Virus record (IMG/VR): IMGVR_UViG_3300002143_000235
Span: 248,001-312,000 of that record
DNA length: 64,000 nt
Strand: one strand, 5' to 3'
Made by a program: the position numbers and the translations under genes. Below are positions 5,259 through 32,266 of this stretch, one piece after another. The notes beneath the pieces are model-generated. The model was not told the origin of the DNA, did not search any database, and saw only the letters and a program-made list of their open reading frames with translations. Numbering within the stretch: position 1 is the first letter of the stretch; each line of letters begins with the position of its first letter.

Positions 5259-5642
5259 ATGTTCACAAAAATATCTGGCTATAAATTATCATTAAAAGAA
5301 AATTTTGATTCAATTTTTAAAAGAACTGAGCAGGAAAAAATTGATTATCTTTTATCAAATACATCGACAAATGATTTATTATCTTTAAAGCAACAATTAA
5401 AAAATGAATTAAATTTTGATTTTGTTTTTGAAAATTATGCTAAAGATGAATACGGTCAAAAACATTTAGTTATATATGGATCAACTGCTGAAAGTATTGC
5501 TGAAAATGATAAATTATGTGAAATAGTCAATGTATGGGAAAAACAAAAAGGATTGACACAGACGATAGAATATAGTGGTAAACCAGATGAAGATGAATAC
5601 GAGTATATTGCAATTCGAATTAATCTTTTTCTTATAAAATAA
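5259..5642 (+). CDS. Putative internal head protein with capsid-targeting-like N-terminus
   Basis: Starts MFTKISGYKLSLKE; TATATA upstream at 5235. Confidence 0.55.
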   Translation: MFTKISGYKLSLKENFDSIFKRTEQEKIDYLLSNTSTNDLLSLKQQLKNELNFDFVFENYAKDEYGQKHLVIYGSTAESIAENDKLCEIVNVWEKQKGLTQTIEYSGKPDEDEYEYIAIRINLFLIK

Positions 5643-5654
5643 AAAAATATTTTT

Positions 5655-6248
5655 ATGTACACAAAAATATCTGACTTTAAAAAGTCACAATTGAATGAAT
5701 CTTTTGGTTCTAATTATACAAATCATCCAATGTCAAATCATGTCATAACAGTTGATGATGCTAAAGCTTTATATGCTTTAGAAGAAAGAGATTTAGGACT
5801 TAATGGTGATAATCTCGATATGGATTTTAATGAATTCTGTGAAGACATCGTTGGAGAAACTTTATCAAATTATGCTACATGGAGATGGCCAGACGAACCG
5901 CAACAACAATTTGATATGGCACTTGAAGTATTAGGTAATAGAATGCATGAATCAAAAAAAATAATTGTTGAAGCACTCGATCGTACTCAAGTATTTAGAC
6001 CGAGTATAGGTATGACTGTTGAAGACATAGCTGAAAATCTTTATGAAATTATTCAAGATGAATATTCTTCTGAAAATGATATTTCAGGTGTTAATGCAAT
6101 AATTTCAAAATTGACTCCAGAAATATGTCAATATTATGTTGATACAGCAATATACGAGGGTGGTGATGATGATGATGAAGAATATAGTCGAATTTATAAT
6201 GTTAAACTTGAAATATTAAAAGAATTGGGTATTGATGTAGAAGATTGA
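5655..6248 (+). CDS. Putative internal head protein with capsid-targeting-like N-terminus
   Basis: Starts MYTKISDFKKSQLNE; acidic body. Confidence 0.55.
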   Translation: MYTKISDFKKSQLNESFGSNYTNHPMSNHVITVDDAKALYALEERDLGLNGDNLDMDFNEFCEDIVGETLSNYATWRWPDEPQQQFDMALEVLGNRMHESKKIIVEALDRTQVFRPSIGMTVEDIAENLYEIIQDEYSSENDISGVNAIISKLTPEICQYYVDTAIYEGGDDDDEEYSRIYNVKLEILKELGIDVED

Positions 6249-6265
6249 ATTAATCTTTTTTTTAT

Positions 6266-6306
6266 AAAATCAAAAAGACCTCATAATGTGAGGTCTTTTT
6301 GATTTT
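6266..6306. terminator. Bidirectional intrinsic terminator
   Basis: AAAATCAAAAAGACCTCA / TGAGGTCTTTTTGATTTT inverted repeat between convergent genes. Confidence 0.85.
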
Positions 6307-6317
6307 GAATCTTTTCA

Positions 6318-6614
6318 TTATTTAGTACGATGCTTTTGGATTTTTCGAAGCTCTAAACATAAATCTAATGCATCATTGTATAGATCATCCATTGGCCAAT
6401 TTTCAACAGAACCATCTGAATTAATATCTATTCGAATAGTGCCATAAATAAAATAATAACCAGTTAACTCTTGTTCAGCAATATCTAAACGAACACGAAG
6501 TGCTTCTACATTATTGTTTACCAAACCTATAAACTCATCATCTGTGTTGAAAAGTTTTATTTGTGCCGGTGTGTACTGTCTAATCCTGATAGGATCATTG
6601 TTTGTATTTTTCAT
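6318..6614 (-). CDS. Hypothetical protein
   Basis: Overlaps stop of the upstream minus-strand gene by 4 nt. Confidence 0.65.
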   Translation of the reverse strand: MKNTNNDPIRIRQYTPAQIKLFNTDDEFIGLVNNNVEALRVRLDIAEQELTGYYFIYGTIRIDINSDGSVENWPMDDLYNDALDLCLELRKIQKHRTK

Positions 6615-23445: not shown

Positions 23446-24201
23446 ATGAAAAACATACACATAATTCCTACAGATAAACCAAGTAAAATATATTCTAAAG
23501 ACCATAATTATAAGTTAGCTAATAGTACTATAGCTATGGATTGGTATATATCATCAGTTGGTTATAAACCTCAAAACATCTACATCACTTCTGATGAAGA
23601 AATTAAAAATGGAGATAGTGTTATTTTAAAAAATGGTAGATTAACTAAAGCAGAAACACGACATGGAACATTAGGGTTTCAAACTATTGATGGTATTGCA
23701 TTTTTATACTTTCAAGATGGTGATAAAAAAATTATCATAACAACAGACAAATATTTGATTGCTGTTGGTGTACAAGCTATTCCTGATGAGTTTTTAGAAT
23801 GGTTTGTTAAAAATACACGTTGTGAGAGTGTTAAAGTTGAAAGTGTTTGTTTAGATGAAACATCTTTTATGTATAATATTATTACTTATGAAATAATCAT
23901 TACAGAAGAAGAAATTAACCCATTTGAATTACCAAAAGCATTACCTGATGATGTTTTTAATGAATTTTTAGAACATAAACAGGAAACTCTTGCACAAGCT
24001 GCTCAAAATTATTTACATAAAGTAGCCGATGGTTTAAGGACTACAGGTTATGCGGACGAAGATTTTGTAGAAGATGCTAAATGGCAAGCAAAAAACATGT
24101 ATAGTGAAGAAGAAGTTTTAGAATTTCTTAACTTTTGGACAGACGCAAGTAAAGAGTGGGGGTTAGCTTCTGCATGGTTTGAACAATTTAAAAAGAAGTA
24201 G
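23446..24201 (+). CDS. Conserved hypothetical protein of flavobacterial phages
   Basis: MKNIHIIPTDKPS...QNIYITSDEEIK...KKIIITTD...GVQAIPDEFLEWFVKN pattern. Confidence 0.65.
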   Translation: MKNIHIIPTDKPSKIYSKDHNYKLANSTIAMDWYISSVGYKPQNIYITSDEEIKNGDSVILKNGRLTKAETRHGTLGFQTIDGIAFLYFQDGDKKIIITTDKYLIAVGVQAIPDEFLEWFVKNTRCESVKVESVCLDETSFMYNIITYEIIITEEEINPFELPKALPDDVFNEFLEHKQETLAQAAQNYLHKVADGLRTTGYADEDFVEDAKWQAKNMYSEEEVLEFLNFWTDASKEWGLASAWFEQFKKK

Positions 24202-24204
24202 TAA

Positions 24205-24693
24205 TTGAAAAATATTCATGCAATGATAGAATTACCAACACGTATACATTTTGATCCAAAAGACTTGACTCGCAAACACCAAGAGCAGCGTTCATGGAAA
24301 CGTGTTGTCCTTTGTGAAACAGATTGTGACATAGAGTCTTATTATGCATGGTTTCTTAAAAAACGTTTCAATTTAAAATTGAATGCACCAATGCGTGGTG
24401 CTCATATTACAATTGTAAATGATAAAGTGCCTGATATTGAATTATTTAATCAAATGCGAGAATTATTTCACAACAAGGAATTGATTTTTAAATTTGATCC
24501 ATCAGAGATTCGATCAAATGCACGACACTGGTGGATGCGTGTTCATTGTGAGGATGTTGCAAATATTAGAACAGTGCTTGGACTTGATCCAAAACCACAT
24601 TTTGGATTACATATGACTATTGGAATGGTAAATGATAAGAACTTATTTCATTCTCAATATATTCACGATACTATAATGCGTTACAGTTTATAA
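24205..24693 (+). CDS. 2H phosphoesterase-family protein
   Basis: Two HxT motifs: AHITIV and LHMTIG. Confidence 0.7.
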   Translation: MKNIHAMIELPTRIHFDPKDLTRKHQEQRSWKRVVLCETDCDIESYYAWFLKKRFNLKLNAPMRGAHITIVNDKVPDIELFNQMRELFHNKELIFKFDPSEIRSNARHWWMRVHCEDVANIRTVLGLDPKPHFGLHMTIGMVNDKNLFHSQYIHDTIMRYSL

Positions 24694-24702
24694 TTATTTA
24701 TT

Positions 24703-25041
24703 ATGATAAAATTTAATAACATACAAGTAGAAGTCTCAACACATTTTGTTGAGCGGTACCGAGAACGTATGCTTGACATGGCTCCAGCTATGTGGAAGAA
24801 TTATAGTACCGATTATAAATACAAACTACGTACTGATATGCGTAATGTTATTCAAAAATGTGAGAAAATTTTGTTTCGTGACTTAGACAAGCCGATTCAA
24901 GATCGTATTCATCAACGGTATAGAACAAACAATATGGTGTTTTTTAAACGTAATAATGTTTATTACGTTGGTGCTTATATTAAACATAGATTTACAAATC
25001 AAGAAACCGTACTTTTGGTTACGGTATTTCGTAACAAATAA
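24703..25041 (+). CDS. Hypothetical protein (possible RelE-like fold)
   Basis: STHFVERYRER...LVTV termini; weak. Confidence 0.5.
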   Translation: MIKFNNIQVEVSTHFVERYRERMLDMAPAMWKNYSTDYKYKLRTDMRNVIQKCEKILFRDLDKPIQDRIHQRYRTNNMVFFKRNNVYYVGAYIKHRFTNQETVLLVTVFRNK

Positions 25042-25043
25042 TT

Positions 25044-25457
25044 ATGACAGAAGAAAATAAACTTCGATTGAAAATTTCGAATATCAATATCAAAATGGTA
25101 CAATTAAGTATTGAAAAACGAGAACTTGAAAAACAACTTCTTAATTCTTATACAACAGATATAGAAAAATTCATATATTGGTTGCATTCAGATCAACAAT
25201 CTAATCACTTAGATCTAATTACATTCAGAACACTATGTCCTTTAACAAGCACAAATATAGAAAATAGATGGGATTTAGACAGATGTAAAACCTATGATTT
25301 AACTGAATGGTTTGGTGATGATTTTTATTGGGCATTTGAAGCATCCGATGAAGAATTAGTTAAAGCTAATATTAAACGTGAAGAATATGTTGACATTATT
25401 CCCGTTGGTATAGAATTAATGAATGCTAATGTTAAATCTTTTACATATGATTGGTAA
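25044..25457 (+). CDS. Hypothetical protein
   Basis: ORF whose 3' end is duplicated at 26384-26436. Confidence 0.65.
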   Translation: MTEENKLRLKISNINIKMVQLSIEKRELEKQLLNSYTTDIEKFIYWLHSDQQSNHLDLITFRTLCPLTSTNIENRWDLDRCKTYDLTEWFGDDFYWAFEASDEELVKANIKREEYVDIIPVGIELMNANVKSFTYDW

Positions 25458-25503
25458 AATGGATAAGATAATTAAAGCCGCAAAAAATGAATCAGAATGG
25501 TTA
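25405..25503 (+). repeat. Diverged ~99-bp direct repeat, copy 1
   Basis: Shares TGATTGGTAAAATGGATAAGATAATTAAAGC exactly with 26384-26482. Confidence 0.85.
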
Positions 25504-25583
25504 CAGCTATACGTCAGGTTTTTCAGATGTAATTTTATCCTTTTTTGAGCGTGGGATGCTCGTAAATATAAATAATAAATAAA

Positions 25584-25889
25584 ATGAAACCAAAAGTAAA
25601 AAAAGAAAAAACGTTGTTTGATGTTTACAGGAATCAAGCAAGTAAAGGATTTAATTATCCTACAATTGAAATGTGTAGTGATGGAGATGTGATTACCTAT
25701 TTAAATTCAATTACATCTAAAAAAGTAAGTGAACTGATTAAATCTAAAGATTGTCCATTACCATTGGAAGTACTTCCAAACCAAATGGGAATAAATCTTT
25801 GTTCAGTTGAATCAGTTTCGTGGAACAAACAAAATGATGGACAATTGACAACATTAACAATAGAGTTTATTCCATCTGAAAAAAAATGA
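25584..25889 (+). CDS. Hypothetical protein in cassette-like unit 1
   Basis: Followed by attC-like hairpin at 25925. Confidence 0.65.
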   Translation: MKPKVKKEKTLFDVYRNQASKGFNYPTIEMCSDGDVITYLNSITSKKVSELIKSKDCPLPLEVLPNQMGINLCSVESVSWNKQNDGQLTTLTIEFIPSEKK

Positions 25890-25924
25890 TTAGAACAATG
25901 CGGTGGCAGGGATAAAATTATTTC

Positions 25925-26054
25925 TGCTAACGTATGGTGCTATACGAAGGAGGTGATTATTAGCACTAAAGTTGATGCGGAGTACAAATGTTGAATATAG
26001 CATAATGTTTCTGCGGAGTACCGAACCGCCTCTTTTGTATAGCATTTGTTATAA
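25925..26054 (+). mobile_element. attC-like recombination site
   Basis: TGCTAAC...GTTATAA ends; inner arms TGCTATACGAAGGAGGTG / CGCCTCTTTTGTATAGCA. Confidence 0.65.
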
Positions 26055-26066
26055 ACAGTTATTATT

Positions 26067-26258
26067 ATGAAAATTTTAGCAATTAACACAAAGAAAAAAT
26101 TTATTGGAAATGCACCAAATGAAATGCACGACCATATACCAAACAAAGGTGATTCAATTTTGTTTGAAGAAAAAAAATATAAAGTTATTTCAAGACATTT
26201 CCAATACAGAAATGAAGAACTTGAAATAGTTAATGTATATGTAAGAAAATTGAAATGA
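26067..26258 (+). CDS. Small hypothetical protein in cassette-like unit 2
   Basis: Single promoterless ORF between two attC-like sites. Confidence 0.65.
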   Translation: MKILAINTKKKFIGNAPNEMHDHIPNKGDSILFEEKKYKVISRHFQYRNEELEIVNVYVRKLK

Positions 26259-26276
26259 TGGGATTTTTATAATTGT

Positions 26277-26349
26277 TTATAACGGTTACACCTATACGTC
26301 AAGTTTTTCACAAAACAAAACAAAACCTGACGTATACGTGGTGTTAGCA
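26277..26349 (+). mobile_element. attC-like recombination site
   Basis: TTATAAC...GTTAGCA ends; inner arms CACCTATACGTCAAGTTTT / AAAACCTGACGTATACGTG. Confidence 0.65.
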
Positions 26350-26383
26350 TCACAACCGGATCATTATGAATTATGGTTTTCTA

Positions 26384-26482
26384 TTGGTCTTGAATTGATG
26401 CGTGAAAATGTTAAATCTTTTGAATTTGATTGGTAAAATGGATAAGATAATTAAAGCAGCAAAAACCGAATCAGAGTGGTTA
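26384..26482 (+). repeat. Diverged ~99-bp direct repeat, copy 2
   Basis: See 25405-25503. Confidence 0.85.
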
Positions 26483-26755
26483 AGACATTACTCACATACT
26501 GATTCCAAAAGAGACGAGCAGTTCGAAGACTTTCTATTCTACGATCGCATGCTTCCAAACGGTTATGCTAAAGTTTACATGCCGTTACATCAAAGATGTC
26601 CAATGGGTTACATACAAGGTTTAGATGTTACAGACAACAAAGATATTATTTATGGTCCTAGAAATCATGATAAAGGTATTTATACTGTATTAGAGTTTGT
26701 AATTTACAACAAGCTTCCTGGATATCAAGAAATGATTGACTATGTGAAATCTTGA
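26438..26755 (+). CDS. Hypothetical protein
   Basis: Likely start MDKIIKAAK at 26438, whose first codons are also present at 25459. Confidence 0.65.
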   Translation: MDKIIKAAKTESEWLRHYSHTDSKRDEQFEDFLFYDRMLPNGYAKVYMPLHQRCPMGYIQGLDVTDNKDIIYGPRNHDKGIYTVLEFVIYNKLPGYQEMIDYVKS

Positions 26756-26790
26756 GATGAATATATATTACAAACAAAAATATTAATACT

Positions 26791-27147
26791 ATGCCAATTC
26801 TATCAGCTACGCACAAACTCGACAAATATATTGATGTTTCTGTTACAGACAGTCGCTATGATGATATTGAAAATTCATCAATTACATTTATTACAAGTTA
26901 TATAGTTGATGTTAATGTAGAAGGATTATCATTTGATATACAAGAAATAACTGATATTAAACTTAATTATACAGGTATTAATTTTACTGATGAAGATGAT
27001 ATAGAACATCCAATATCATTTACAGTTCTTGATTTTAATAAAGAAGTAACTATTGATAATGCTGGGGGTGATCGTCAAATGCTTCAACCTTCTGAAGTTG
27101 AAATAAATATCGATGAAAGTAAAATTCGTTTTTATTTCTTGTATTAA
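26791..27147 (+). CDS. Hypothetical protein (possibly late/structural)
   Basis: TATATA upstream; beta-rich acidic sequence. Confidence 0.55.
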   Translation: MPILSATHKLDKYIDVSVTDSRYDDIENSSITFITSYIVDVNVEGLSFDIQEITDIKLNYTGINFTDEDDIEHPISFTVLDFNKEVTIDNAGGDRQMLQPSEVEINIDESKIRFYFLY

Positions 27148-27164
27148 ATTCGTATGTTTACAGG

Positions 27165-27524
27165 ATGAAAATATCATTTGATTTTGACTCTTGTTTATCT
27201 ACTAAACGTATACAACGTCTTGCAAAGACATATATCGATCAAGGACATGAAGTATGGGTTACAACATCTCGTTTTCCTAGTTCTGATGAAATTGTAAGTA
27301 AATGGCCTTGGATTAAGAATCAAAATCAAATGTTATTTGAGATTTTAACTGAACTTGGAATTCCACACGATCGTGTAAATTTTACAGCAATGGTTGACAA
27401 GTGGACAGTTCTAGATGGATTCGATATACATTTTGATGATGATCAAACTGAAATAGACTTAATTGATGAGAATCTTTCATCATGTATAGGTATTCTTATT
27501 TTAACACCATATATTTACGAATAA
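27165..27524 (+). CDS. HAD-superfamily hydrolase
   Basis: ISFDFDSCL (DxD), VTTSR, K, HFDDD motifs. Confidence 0.8.
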   Translation: MKISFDFDSCLSTKRIQRLAKTYIDQGHEVWVTTSRFPSSDEIVSKWPWIKNQNQMLFEILTELGIPHDRVNFTAMVDKWTVLDGFDIHFDDDQTEIDLIDENLSSCIGILILTPYIYE

Positions 27525-28558
27525 TGAAGAGTAAACTGTTGCAGCAGCTTGAAGAACGCCCAATACTTGCTAAAACATATTGGAAAGATCTTTATAATAT
27601 TGATATTGAGGAACTTAAAAAAATGTATTCACATCCTAGTCGTGGTTATCATAACTGGGAACATGTCGATAATGTACTTTACCATATTGAGCAGAGTATA
27701 GGTTACGATGATAATGGAATGGTCCTCAGAATTGCTGCATTATTTCATGATGCTATTTATGATAGTCGTAGAAATGATAATGAGGTAAAGAGTGCTAAGC
27801 TTGTGCATGATATCAAACTAAGTGATCCACTTAAGAAACGTATCATGGATATTATTCTGTTCACTACTTATACACGTGAGCCAGAAACGGAAGAAGAATC
27901 AATTTTTATGGATGCTGATTTGAGTATCTTTAATGGTACACAAGAAGACATGGTAGCTTTTGAACTTGGTATTTTACATGAATATTCTTGGGTACCACTC
28001 AATGTTTATATCGAAGAACGGTGCAAAGTGCTCGAGAAAATTCGAGACAAATTTCATATTGATACATGGTTTAATATTACATGGTTGAGAACAAAAATTT
28101 GGAATATTGGTGTCTATGCTGGATCTTTCTATCCAATGACTATCGGACACATGGACATCTTGAATCAGGCACGAAAGATTTTTGATCGTGTCATTGTTGT
28201 AAAAAGTTCAGACGATCGTGTACAACGTAAAACAAAATTTGAATGGGATGATTTTACATTTGGTAGATTAAATAAATGTCTTGACAATTTTGAAACGTAT
28301 CAAGTAAAAGATTTGATCACTGACAACTTACGTGATATAAAGGAAATGTACGGTAGTGCAACACTTATTCGCGGGCTCAGAAATGGTTCAGATCTTCAAT
28401 ATGAACAAAATTATTTACAGACACTTCGAGAAATTGATCCATCTGTGCAGTTTGTAACATTTCTTTCCAGACCTGAATTTGCACACGTATCAAGTTCTAT
28501 GGTTCGTGAGTTGTTATCAGTAGATCCTAAACTAGCAAAACGTTATTACGAGTTCTAA
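27524..28558 (+). CDS. coaD: HD-domain / phosphopantetheine adenylyltransferase fusion
   Basis: N-term RGYHNWEH...LFHDAIYD...NE..SA...DADL; C-term GVYAGSFYPMTIGHMDI...IRGLRNGSDLQYE...VSSSMVREL. Confidence 0.8.
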   Translation: MKSKLLQQLEERPILAKTYWKDLYNIDIEELKKMYSHPSRGYHNWEHVDNVLYHIEQSIGYDDNGMVLRIAALFHDAIYDSRRNDNEVKSAKLVHDIKLSDPLKKRIMDIILFTTYTREPETEEESIFMDADLSIFNGTQEDMVAFELGILHEYSWVPLNVYIEERCKVLEKIRDKFHIDTWFNITWLRTKIWNIGVYAGSFYPMTIGHMDILNQARKIFDRVIVVKSSDDRVQRKTKFEWDDFTFGRLNKCLDNFETYQVKDLITDNLRDIKEMYGSATLIRGLRNGSDLQYEQNYLQTLREIDPSVQFVTFLSRPEFAHVSSSMVRELLSVDPKLAKRYYEF

Positions 28559-28587: not shown

Positions 28588-29157
28588 ATGTGCATGAATA
28601 ACAGCACAGTGACTACAGATCAAAAAAATCTTCCAAATACACGTATTAAACTCATTATAGCTATTGATAAGAACGGTGTAATGGGAATTGATAATAAACT
28701 TCCTTGGCGTCTTTCAGAAGACCTAAAACAATTCAAGAAAGAAACTGATGGATACCCATTAATTATGGGTTCTGCCACATTCAAATCACTTCCAGGTATT
28801 CTTCCTAACAGAGAACATTTAGTGCTCTCAAAATCACTCTATGGAGACGAGGACAAGTCTGTCTTCACATCTATCAAAGAGTTAATTGATTACCTAAACG
28901 ATTCAGGATACGAAAGTGCTTATGTTATAGGTGGAGCAAATGTTATTTCTCAATTTACTTACATGAATCTTATTGATGAATTGATAATAACACATGTTGA
29001 TTGTGAGGTAGAAGGAGACACTATTCTAAATATTGACACAGATCTTAAAATTCATTCTTGGTCACTTTATCGTAGTGAAAAATACACTAAAAACGAAAAG
29101 AACCAATACGGCTTTACAATCAATCGATACACACGTACAAAAAAAAGATTCTATTAA
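28588..29157 (+). CDS. folA: Dihydrofolate reductase
   Basis: AIDKNGVMGIDNKLPWRLSEDLKQFK..T..MG..TF.SL...LPNR...VIGGA...GDT. Confidence 0.93.
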   Translation: MCMNNSTVTTDQKNLPNTRIKLIIAIDKNGVMGIDNKLPWRLSEDLKQFKKETDGYPLIMGSATFKSLPGILPNREHLVLSKSLYGDEDKSVFTSIKELIDYLNDSGYESAYVIGGANVISQFTYMNLIDELIITHVDCEVEGDTILNIDTDLKIHSWSLYRSEKYTKNEKNQYGFTINRYTRTKKRFY

Positions 29158-30009: not shown

Positions 30010-30313
30010 TGAGTATAAAAGAAAAAAAATCAACATCTTGCTGAGAATATTGATGCATTGATTACCGATTTTATAGAATCGTATCAATCTGGTCCAGCAG
30101 AAACACTATACTATAATACGTATTCTACAACTTGTATAAAATATTTGAGTGAGTGTATTGACCTATTTAATACTTTTTTACCGTTTGACCCAGATAGTGA
30201 ATTGTTAAAAGATTACGTGTACCTTCAATACTTACGCGAGATCATGTGTGATACGATGAAAGAAAGAAAGAAAATACTTAAAATGTTATGTTCCAGGTAA
30301 CGAGCATAAAAAG

Positions 30314-30346: not shown

Positions 30347-32266
30347 TTATGATATTTTGTAATATCCTTGTTTTGTAATTCTAAAAACTATGGTTCCAGA
30401 ATTATATTTTGTTAAAAATTTCACATAATTTATTAAAGCTGAAATACTACCAGCAGTAGCGCCTGAAACTGGTCCTTGTGGTGGATATACATAATGTATA
30501 ACATCACCATTTTGGTATTCCGGCCAGGCATCAGGTGTTTCTGTTTGTGTAAATATTCTAAAAGCTTGACCAGCACTATCAGTAATACGAGCCTGTAAAA
30601 ATATATTTTTTAAATACTCAGCACCACTTACAATTTCAAATTCTAAAAATGGTGAAATTGTGTTGACACCAGAAATTGCAATTGATCCGAAATTAAAAGT
30701 TCCAAAATTAGTTACGCCTGTGTTACCTGTAAATGTACATAACATACCAGGATTCTTAGCTGTAAAAACAAATGTACCGCCTGTTAATCCTGTAGTAACA
30801 GTACCTGTGGCTACAGTACCTGTAGCTGGTGCTTGTGCTGCAATTGACCCTAATAATGTATAATTAGTAGAAACAATTGGTTTTTTACGCAACCAATTAT
30901 TAGAGATACGACTAAATGTATCAGCATTAATTCTAGCATTTCTTAATGTCCCTTTTACATTGGGGTGAACACTATTATCAGTAAATGGACAATGTGTGAA
31001 AGTTACAGTTGTATTTGTTCCTGATGCTGAAACTGTATAAGTACCAATGTCACCTGTTCCTGTTCCAAATGCTGTAATATAAAATGTTGATGCACCAATA
31101 AAAAAATAACTATTGATTTCTAATGGTACTACTGGTGATGACGTTACTGTAAGTGTTGTTCCACTGCGTGAACCTTGAACTGGGTATGTAATAGGTATTG
31201 ATAGATCTGTAGGCTCAGAATATGATATCAGATCACTGCAAAATATTGTGTCATTATTATCTAATGATAATATGTAATCACGTATTTCCGCATAATTTGT
31301 TTTAAGTGTTGGTGTGGAATATGATAATGATGGGTGGGGGGTATTCAATAATATTTTAACACCAACCCATCGTTCCTGAACCATATTAATCCACTTATCA
31401 ATTGAAATTATCATCTGTGGTACTGTTTGTCCAGCGACAATATCATTTTCAACAAGTGCATACCCAATCGCAATATCAGGATATGGATTGTAATTTGCTA
31501 ATCCAATTGGATTGAACCAATGTGTTTCTATATCACCAAGCATGGTAGCGAGAGTAGCTCCGCCTCTACCATAGATTCCAAATGCATCACAATATGTAGT
31601 TATAGTTGTTGGTGTGAACTCCATACATGAATCAGATATAGAATTTGCTATATGAATACCCTTTTGCATTCCTGATGATTGAGTAGATTGTGATAATACT
31701 GCAATAGAATTTCCAAATGCTACAGCTTTCATTAAATTCATTGAATCAGAAATCAAAACATATTTTGTTCCGTTCCATTTGTATGTTGTTCCCGTTTCTA
31801 AATTCAAGTACAGTCTATTAGACATACCAGTATCTGGAAAATCCGCAACACTTGAATAACCAATTGTTGTAAAGAATGTACCAACTACAGCAGGAGTAAT
31901 TGCTGATCTTGGATATTCATAACTCAAAAATGATATAAGATTACGTGGTTGATAGATATCAAGAAATGTTTCACTAACAGATGGAATTGCTGATAAATAA
32001 TATCTATCAGTCCAATCAGCAGTTGGGATGTATTGATCAAAATCTGCTGCATCAATTTCATCACGTGTATATACAGCAAGATGACCGTCACGATCCGTAT
32101 TCATAAATATGAAAAATTGTCTATAATCAAATGTTGGATCAGGTGTTGCTGGAAGTGCTGGTATAGATGATTCTTCTGGAAAAAATGTCTTGTATGCAAA
32201 TAATTGTTCAAGCATTTTACGATCGTGATCATTTTCTGGTACAATTTTAAATGTTCTGCTAGCCAT
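30347..32266 (-). CDS. SGNH-hydrolase-domain protein, probably virion/tail associated
   Basis: FGNSIA (block I), GRGGAT (II), ENDI (III), DNSVHP (V); Thr/Gly-rich beta regions. Confidence 0.65.
   Translation of the reverse strand: MASRTFKIVPENDHDRKMLEQLFAYKTFFPEESSIPALPATPDPTFDYRQFFIFMNTDRDGHLAVYTRDEIDAADFDQYIPTADWTDRYYLSAIPSVSETFLDIYQPRNLISFLSYEYPRSAITPAVVGTFFTTIGYSSVADFPDTGMSNRLYLNLETGTTYKWNGTKYVLISDSMNLMKAVAFGNSIAVLSQSTQSSGMQKGIHIANSISDSCMEFTPTTITTYCDAFGIYGRGGATLATMLGDIETHWFNPIGLANYNPYPDIAIGYALVENDIVAGQTVPQMIISIDKWINMVQERWVGVKILLNTPHPSLSYSTPTLKTNYAEIRDYILSLDNNDTIFCSDLISYSEPTDLSIPITYPVQGSRSGTTLTVTSSPVVPLEINSYFFIGASTFYITAFGTGTGDIGTYTVSASGTNTTVTFTHCPFTDNSVHPNVKGTLRNARINADTFSRISNNWLRKKPIVSTNYTLLGSIAAQAPATGTVATGTVTTGLTGGTFVFTAKNPGMLCTFTGNTGVTNFGTFNFGSIAISGVNTISPFLEFEIVSGAEYLKNIFLQARITDSAGQAFRIFTQTETPDAWPEYQNGDVIHYVYPPQGPVSGATAGSISALINYVKFLTKYNSGTIVFRITKQGYYKIS

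Follow-up and report, generated by a model that had tools for sequence, protein, structure and literature searches.

Integron-like gene cassettes bounded by attC-like hairpins in a Flavobacterium-type jumbo phage

Why should two small genes, each followed by an imperfect hairpin, lie between two diverged copies of the same gene junction in the genome of a giant Flavobacterium-type phage? To address this question, we analysed a 64,000-nt stretch (hereafter the window; positions 248,001 to 312,000 of IMG/VR record IMGVR_UViG_3300002143_000235, a virus record of 313,708 bp). An earlier note, made from the sequence alone, had read the locus as two integron-like cassettes with attC-like sites, captured from a Bacteroidota cassette pool, with the flanking duplication recording recombination between related phages. 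The features that it described are all present, with small coordinate corrections (Table 1), and its peptide readings of the repeated gene junction appear in the ORF translations. Its interpretation is supported and largely right, with qualifications concerning the recombinase, the donor pool and the junctions with the phage backbone.

Table 1. Features of the cassette-bearing insert and its flanks (window coordinates)
Position	Strand	Feature	Basis
25044..25457	+	geneA (137 aa, no known family), resident backbone gene upstream of the insert	ORF list; syntenic 132/138-aa gene directly before geneB in L077-L079
25405..25503	+	Copy 1 of the 99-nt direct repeat: real 3' end of geneA plus a 45-nt fragment of a geneB start (25459-25503)	86% identity between copies; tblastn of geneB residues 1-18 matches here at 83%
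25499..25525	+	Truncated hairpin-2-type site; 5' arm and part of the loop remain, TAAC, 3' arm and GTTA missing; joins the geneB fragment within the microhomology AA(T/C)GGTTA	92.6% identity over 27 nt to 26284-26310
25504-26482		979-bp insert	Empty site in L077-L079
25524..25540	+	X1, start of cassette 1	Complementary to 25910-25926, 17 nt, 88%; homology with L072 begins at 25526
25584..25889	+	ORF101 (101 aa), gene of cassette 1, function unknown	28 homologues; the best (P0001) is 94% identical and lies in a different gene context
25910..25927	+	X1', end of cassette 1, directly before TAAC	Homology with L072 runs through X1' and TAAC and stops right after TAAC
25928..26051	+	Hairpin 1 (124 nt), attC-like site: TAACG/TGTTA outer helix, asymmetric internal loop, 18-bp stem, variable ~65-nt tip	TAAC 25928-25931, GTTA 26048-26051; covariance model score 127.7 bits
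26052..26062	+	X2, start of cassette 2	26048-26062 pairs with 26269-26283, 15 nt, 93%; conserved in L089
26067..26258	+	ORF63 (63 aa), gene of cassette 2, function unknown; eight residues shorter than its homologues because of TGG to TGA at 26256-26258	Nine homologues of 68-85 aa; in L089 the 71-aa ORF ends in the TAA of TAAC
26269..26279	+	X2', end of cassette 2, directly before TAAC	Homology with L089 stops right after TAAC
26280..26346	+	Hairpin 2 (67 nt), short attC-like site with the same TAACG...TGTTA frame	TAAC 26280-26283, GTTA 26343-26346; arms of 19 nt, 89% complementary
26347..26436	+	Fragment of a second geneA allele (last ~28 codons and stop), starting right after the GTTA of hairpin 2	Translation aligns with the C-terminus of geneA in L077/L078 better than resident geneA does; tblastn
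26384..26482	+	Copy 2 of the 99-nt repeat: geneA-allele fragment plus the real start of geneB	86% identity between copies
26438..26755	+	geneB (105 aa, no known family), intact backbone gene downstream of the insert	Homologues of 58-82% identity; abuts geneA in L077-L079

To establish whether the segment is an insertion, we looked for related phages lacking it. A search for related loci in IMG/VR with geneA and geneB gave nothing, and relatives were found only through a word search and contig look-up. Three related phage contigs (L077-L079) have the same gene order with geneA and geneB directly abutting, representing the empty site. Profile searches of geneA, ORF101, ORF63, geneB and their neighbours against Pfam and PHROG returned nothing useful for these four central genes, and an ESM Atlas look-up of ORF101 gave no usable hit. 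In agreement with the description of the genes as promoterless, no Bacteroidetes -7 box (TAnnTTTG), the only promoter type assessed, occurs on the + strand in 25400-26500, against 0.69 per kb in the whole window.

We next examined the two hairpins. As RNA, hairpin 1 folds at -58.7 kcal/mol (z = -5.65); as DNA, its + strand forms the long stem and its - strand does not. Hairpin 2 gave DNA fold z-scores of -4.3 (+ strand) and -4.6 (- strand). A BLAST search of the 313-kb record showed hairpin 1 to be single-copy, so it is not a dispersed repeat of this phage. An Rfam scan of 24000-28000 at E up to 10 returned only chance snoRNA/miRNA-level hits.

Hairpin 1 nevertheless belongs to a large family. 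An exact 21-base pattern from its 5' arm occurs in 56 IMG/VR contigs and 11 genome contigs, and the score in Table 1 was obtained with a covariance model built from 45 homologues. Hairpin 2 matches this model only weakly (15.8 bits, E 0.0046 over 1.3 kb, full model span, filters off), and its exact 22-mer is absent from IMG/VR. The consensus comprises a 5-bp outer helix, an asymmetric internal loop (about 5 nt versus 3 nt), a 14-18 bp stem and a variable tip of ~65 nt. Over 134 copies, 96.7% of cells are paired, 13 of 14 main-stem pairs show compensatory changes, and the covariation score is 0.439 against 0.10 for shuffles. The TAAC/GTTA box is essentially invariant, the A-U, A-U and C-G pairs of the outer helix being unchanged in 123-125 of 127 distinct family members. 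On the basis of this family-level covariation, we rejected chance hairpins and plain terminators.

The sites form arrays in Flavobacterium phages, with about 15 copies in locus L008, 10 in locus L042 and 12 in Flavobacterium phage hemulen6-1, one per intergenic gap of the leftward operon. The cassette ends follow a rule: the variable three bases after the GTTA of one site fully complement those before the TAAC of the next site in 78 of 108 neighbour pairs, compared with 5.6% for random pairs and 8% for the flanks of the same site. Each gene unit starts right after GTTA with a short sequence X and ends right before the next TAAC with its complement X', and a circularised cassette would therefore rebuild one long continuous stem. 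The complementarity that the earlier note saw in two cassettes is a family-wide rule, which the window's cassettes and the bacterial arrays obey. In contrast, a search of the window for a complementary partner of the sequence after hairpin 2 returned only the self-match, and the backbone after hairpin 2 is therefore not a cassette start.

The bounding of each gene by inverted repeats of 15-20 nt ending in GTTA and TAAC, together with the many copies per bacterial genome, which break assemblies, could also suggest miniature transposable elements (MITE-like or IS-derived) moved by a transposase acting in trans. However, the flanks are complementary rather than direct and show no target-site duplication, copies are arranged head-to-tail in one orientation next to a tyrosine recombinase, and the repeat tips vary freely while only TAAC/GTTA is fixed. 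We therefore rejected this reading, for want of target duplications, as very unlikely.

To determine whether the cassettes move as units, we compared their occurrences elsewhere. The ORF101 cassette recurs in locus L072, with homology ending exactly at TAAC, although the covariance model had no hit in L072-L076, and the ORF63 cassette recurs in locus L089 inside an array of such hairpins, with homology likewise ending at TAAC. Furthermore, one hairpin type plus its downstream methyltransferase gene follows 27 different upstream flanks. This association does not hold in general: when pairs were collapsed into clusters, hairpin identity was only loosely linked to either neighbouring gene, which a single fixed crossover point does not predict.

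This loose linkage, the high conservation of the arms over about 20 nt and the absence of a recombinase from the jumbo phage and from complete array-bearing phages raise the alternative that the hairpins are portable homology blocks, like the PeSL promoter/stem-loop motifs of T4-type phages, whose shuffling with mini-circles is documented (PMC2839356, PMC4122927). As with PeSLs, repeated intergenic stem-loops flank small novel genes in plastic regions of large phages and are linked to insertion, deletion and replacement of those genes. PeSLs, however, are composites of an early promoter and a stem-loop terminator acting by homologous recombination, whereas the insert has no -7 box (sigma-70-type promoters not being assessed) and no T-run follows either stem. 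Moreover, homology between cassette copies ends sharply at TAAC and not inside the arms, the X/X' complementarity has no role in this model, and bacterial arrays end at a tyrosine recombinase and a conserved attI-like core. We regard this alternative as unlikely.

Of 121 sampled genomes of Flavobacterium croceum's genus, 65 have the sites, and in four genomes a Xer/IntI-like tyrosine recombinase lies at the predicted array end. Three of these (G006, G007 and G017) share an attI-like core, ATAT[A/T]AATAA followed by GTTA and then by the X of the first cassette; nothing of the kind is in the window. The recombinase is not a canonical IntI: it scores 216.6 against the TIGR02249 integron-integrase cut-off of 265 and lacks the IntI-specific domain, about 60 residues of VchIntIA corresponding to 18 residues. 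No recombinase is encoded in the window or in three complete array-bearing phages, and no PF00589 match was found anywhere in the 313,708-bp record.

Gene polarity distinguishes the two kinds of array. In bacterial arrays, genes lie opposite the modelled strand (19 versus 3 intervals), as in integrons, whose ORFs lie on the top strand and whose folded, recombined strand is the bottom one; in phage arrays (89 versus 3; 89 of 101 intervals) and in the window they lie on the modelled strand, the strands being named by analogy with the bacterial arrays. The donor pool thus appears to be phage-type rather than bacterial arrays. The phage polarity, the stability of the hairpin 1 RNA fold and several invariant G.U pairs, stable only on that strand, would also fit intercistronic processing or stability signals (RNase III-type sites or protective 3' stem-loops) of early operons, spread simply by exchange of operon segments. 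Yet in bacterial arrays the genes are on the opposite strand, so their mRNA would carry C.A mismatches, and conserved TAAC/GTTA and gene-spanning X/X' pairing are not expected of processing sites. A pure RNA role was therefore rejected and is improbable as the main explanation, although a secondary, co-opted RNA role in phages is not excluded.

Collectively, these observations make it probable that the insert is a fragment of a gene-cassette array that entered the jumbo-phage backbone between geneA and geneB, and that the hairpins, including the truncated third, are single-strand-folding recombination sites working like integron attC sites. We infer that a host-encoded recombinase of this kind cuts at TAA|C on the modelled strand and moves cassettes among phage arrays, although no recombination was observed. 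Entry into the backbone does not appear to have been a clean site-specific event: the left junction lies inside the site's spacer, and the right junction lies at GTTA, which is not the inferred crossover point. Instead, we infer illegitimate or homology-facilitated recombination between two related jumbo phages, leaving a geneB start fragment on the left and a geneA-allele end fragment on the right. The second geneA end resembles the allele of related phages more than the resident geneA does, which supports recombination between related phages.

Compared with integron attC sites and cassette arrays, especially sedentary chromosomal integrons with long uniform repeats such as the Vibrio cholerae repeats, the family shares AAC...GTT core triplets, an imperfect palindrome with outer box, unpaired spacer, inner stem and variable tip, site lengths of 67-146 nt, one-orientation arrays of promoterless small genes and, in bacteria, a recombinase gene and conserved junction site at one array end. 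It differs in its recombinase, in complementary cassette ends of 12 nt or more rather than 6-7, and in the reversed polarity of phage arrays. With two sites 229 nt apart, a truncated third and no tyrosine recombinase in 313 kb, the locus corresponds to a CALIN (cluster of attC sites lacking an integrase), as reported in virulent phages, where methyltransferase genes are frequent cargo (Qi et al. 2023; PMC9892861). One example there, Polaribacter phage P12002L, infects a member of the Flavobacteriaceae, and IntI1 was reported to recombine one of its sites; our model does not hit P12002L, but short TAACGG...TGTTA hairpins of the same frame are visible by eye in its methyltransferase gaps. That study lists 17 CALINs with as few as two sites and does not mention Flavobacterium, whereas the arrays here reach 12-15 sites, fill an entire early operon and are tied to chromosomal arrays in the hosts. 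A hairpin folded from one DNA strand that would present the site to a host Xer-family recombinase also recalls the attP of CTX-type phages used by XerCD, but CTX integrates a whole phage at dif, whereas here many small cassettes are arrayed and no dif-like arms were recognised.

A broader reading remains possible but tentative, somewhat less likely than not: the hairpins may be the sites of a previously undescribed integron-like system of Flavobacterium, run by a Xer-like recombinase without the IntI domain, with chromosomal arrays that may span up to about 200 kb. In this view, Flavobacterium phages build their early operons from the same kind of cassettes in inverted gene polarity and borrow the host enzyme to swap counter-defence genes such as methyltransferases, and even jumbo phages pick up fragments of these arrays.

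Integrons are the textbook engine of gene capture in Proteobacteria, and surveys report them as nearly absent from Bacteroidota, the IntegronFinder 2.0 paper naming one complete integron there. If the family is what it appears to be, detection pipelines keyed to the IntI domain and the canonical attC model may miss whole systems, and the sites give a way to find cassette boundaries, and so units of selection, in thousands of metagenomic phage contigs. For the window itself, comparison with the empty site gives a dated, bounded example of a jumbo phage acquiring two genes. On the same condition, Flavobacterium carries large cassette arrays served by a different branch of tyrosine recombinases, and its phages use the same currency to assemble their early, host-takeover operons, offering a concrete, testable mechanism for the turnover of small 'ORFan' genes and orphan methyltransferases in phage genomes.

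The 313,708-bp IMG/VR virus record that holds the window has an estimated completeness of 80%. Genes near the insert include helicases, and relatives carry UvsW-like and T4 gp13-like genes, so the record represents a jumbo phage. Every element listed in the earlier note, which had described two integron-like cassettes bracketed by a diverged direct repeat, is present, and the corresponding features are compiled in the table below together with those found in other sequences. Compared with shuffled sequences, hairpin 1 folds far better as RNA (z = -5.65), whereas as DNA only its + strand forms the long stem. The end complementarities of the two cassettes are real, extending over 15 nt at 93% and 17 nt at 88%. 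No tyrosine recombinase domain was found in the whole 313-kb record, and no Bacteroidetes-type -7 box lies on the coding strand of the insert.

Coordinates of the insert, its flanking genes and related features in phage and bacterial sequences
Sequence	Position	Feature
Window	24205-24693	162-aa gene matching phrog_12204 (E 3.6e-20) and weakly the 2H phosphoesterase 'Swiss Army Knife' domain (PF22547); the same domain is flagged in the relative L080
Window	25405-25503 and 26384-26482	99-nt direct repeat, 86% identical
Window	25499-25525	Truncated site, matching the 5' arm of hairpin 2 at 92.6%
Window	25928 (TAAC) to 26051 (GTTA)	Hairpin 1
Window	26256-26258	TGA ending ORF63, TGG in homologues
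Window	26280 (TAAC) to 26346 (GTTA)	Hairpin 2
Window	27482-28558 and 28588-29157	Cytidylyltransferase-like gene with an HD-like N-terminal part and dihydrofolate reductase gene, just downstream of the insert; both conserved in the related phages L077/L078
L059 (MN812208.1, phage hemulen6-1)	2062-2772 and 2696-2836	Annotated start of gp005 (a DNA methyltransferase) lying inside the hairpin
L071 (Polaribacter phage P12002L)	about 30010-30080 and 30880-30965, - strand	Short hairpins in gaps between methyltransferase genes
L073, L074, L075, L076 (phage contigs)	L073:4960-5195	Homologues of about 58 aa flanked by a perfect 15-nt inverted repeat
L007, L051, L072 (phage-type contigs)	L007, - strand, oriented position 5651; L051:4605; L072:8343	Array end with X', TAAC and a shared motif
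L061 (Flavobacterium croceum DSM 17960, NZ_PQNY01000029.1)	5434-6365	Methyltransferase cassette in the phage polarity, flanked by two sites
G017:C1; G096:C1; L082, L084, L086-L088 (Flavobacterium chromosomes)	G017:C1 about 885-1088 kb; G096:C1 about 207-243 kb	Large one-orientation arrays of the same sites
A3 (alignment of family copies)	columns 46/228 and 13/246	Two base pairs that are G.U in essentially all 127 distinct copies

To place hairpin 1 among known sequences, we performed a blastn search, which identified a 72%-identical copy between two methyltransferase genes of Flavobacterium phages hemulen and stinky, with compensatory changes in the stem. An exact pattern with 21 specified bases from the 5' arm occurs in 56 IMG/VR contigs and in 11 genome contigs, mostly Flavobacteriales. 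We aligned 45 distinct copies and built a covariance model (R1), whose consensus structure comprises an invariant TAACG/TGTTA outer helix, an asymmetric internal loop, an 18-bp stem and a variable tip of about 65 nt that falls into at least four sequence types. Over 134 copies, 96.7% of cells are paired and 13 of 14 main-stem pairs show changes on both sides, with a covariation score of 0.439 against 0.10 for shuffles and under 0.1 for slid partners. Hairpin 2 is a short member of the same frame, which R1 aligns end to end at 15.8 bits (E 0.0046 over 1.3 kb with filters off), although E-values from R1 are rough.

Application of R1 to the same contigs revealed many more copies, which share one strand and sit one per intergenic gap: about 15 in contig L008, 10 in L042, 8 in L033 and 7 in L016. 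The isolated phage hemulen6-1 has 12 copies, covering the leftward operon gp004-gp022, which holds small hypothetical genes, four methyltransferases and an HTH regulator. In nearly every locus, a same-strand upstream ORF ends 10 nt before TAAC or uses the TAA of TAAC as its stop codon. The reading frame of hemulen6-1 gp005 stays open through the hairpin, and the true start of this gene is probably just after the site, near a GGAGG motif.

The 12 nt after GTTA of one site complement the 12 nt before TAAC of the next site, across the intervening gene. In the three most variable positions, the match is perfect in 78 of 108 neighbour pairs, compared with 5.6% for random pairs and 8% for the two flanks of the same site. 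This is the classical property of integron cassettes, in which a circularised cassette would rebuild one continuous stem, and it is exactly what the earlier note had recognised in the window's two cassettes.

Several comparisons between contigs bear on mobility, although no recombination was observed. One hairpin type, together with the PF01555-type methyltransferase gene after it, follows 27 different upstream flanks. However, linkage between a hairpin and its neighbouring genes is loose, which the simple one-crossover model does not explain. ORF101 has a 94%-identical homologue in a different context in contig L072, where homology with the window begins at X1 (25526; X1 is the start of cassette 1), runs through its end, X1', and TAAC, and stops there. 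Homologues of about 58 aa, matching the C-terminal half of ORF101, lie in ~48-kb phage contigs, where perfect 15-nt inverted repeats ending in GTT and AAC flank them and two contigs diverge right after AAC; no long hairpin is present, which suggests that minimal versions of the sites exist that the model cannot see. Similarly, ORF63 has an 84%-identical homologue in a 174.5-kb contig (L089), inside an array of R1-positive sites, and homology again runs from just before GTTA through X2 (the start of cassette 2), the ORF and X2' (its end) to TAAC, and then stops. The L089 ORF is 71 aa, whereas the window copy, owing to the TGG-to-TGA change, is 63 aa; homologues read on for 8 more codons through X2' and stop at the TAA of TAAC, and the window copy may be a truncated or decaying cassette gene.

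Three Logan contigs (L077-L079; geneB 82% identical) show the same gene order as the window on both sides, including the cytidylyltransferase-like and DHFR genes downstream, but in these contigs geneA and geneB abut, representing the empty site. At the left junction, a 45-nt geneB start is fused to the spacer of a hairpin-2-type site within the microhomology AA(T/C)GGTTA, and that site has lost its 3' half. At the right junction, the backbone resumes directly after the GTTA of hairpin 2 with the last ~28 codons of a geneA allele, which resembles the L077 allele more than the resident geneA does. The sequence after hairpin 2 has no complementary partner in the window. These junctions do not fit a clean site-specific insertion; rather, they fit one illegitimate join plus homologous exchange between two related jumbo phages, one of which already carried the cassettes, a step that is inferred.

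CALINs in phages were reported by Qi et al. 2023, including a Polaribacter phage with methyltransferase cassettes and a site that IntI1 recombined, but that paper does not mention Flavobacterium. R1 does not hit the Polaribacter phage, although short TAACGG...TGTTA or CAACGG...TGTTA hairpins of the same frame, preceded by ATTG(T)TGC-like flanks, are visible in the gaps between its methyltransferase genes. PeSL motifs of T4-type phages are the nearest phage analogue in effect, but they differ in anatomy. The IntegronFinder 2.0 paper names one complete integron in Bacteroidetes, and a 2024 preprint counts Bacteroidota among clades previously found without integrons. We found no description of the present family, or of its large chromosomal arrays in Flavobacterium, in the literature searched, which was incomplete.

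On the bacterial side, Flavobacterium croceum DSM 17960 has at least 63 R1 matches spread over many small contigs, often at contig ends; many contigs of this assembly begin or end inside a site, so the repeats break the assembly. A match at E of 1e-6 or better was found in 65 of 121 sampled genomes of its genus, although only 26 candidates per genome were scored. Some matches spread over large regions, spanning about 890-1088 kb in one complete chromosome and 207-240 kb in another. In four genomes, a tyrosine recombinase gene lies at the array end where an attI would be expected, co-directional with the cassettes in three genomes and divergent in one. Three of these genomes share a junction core (ATAT[A/T]AATAA followed by GTTA), which is followed by a sequence complementary to the end of the first cassette. 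By contrast, in three phage-type contigs an array ends with X' (the end of a cassette), TAAC and then a shared motif (TAACTAYTCGCTARA) instead of a hairpin; this may be an array-terminal site, and it differs from the bacterial attI-like core. The recombinase passes the NCBIfam model named 'tyrosine recombinase/integron integrase' (223.5 against a cut-off of 220) but misses the integron-integrase model (216.6 against 265). Where VchIntIA has about 60 residues, including the IntI-specific domain, it has 18, and it is therefore Xer-like, not a canonical IntI.

To compare strand polarity, we examined the longest ORF between sites. In bacterial arrays, it lies on the strand opposite the modelled one in 19 intervals, against 3 on the same strand, whereas in phage arrays it lies on the modelled strand in 89 intervals, against 3 on the opposite strand and 9 ambiguous. 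The modelled strand therefore corresponds to the integron 'bottom' strand, and its invariant G.T wobbles would make it, and not its complement, fold well. In the family alignment, the two pairs that are almost always G.U never become G-C or A-U; the wobble itself seems to be required, perhaps to make only one DNA strand fold. The asymmetry does not follow transcription, which argues for a DNA-level role. It also means that phage cassettes form a pool of their own, and the window's cassettes have the phage polarity.
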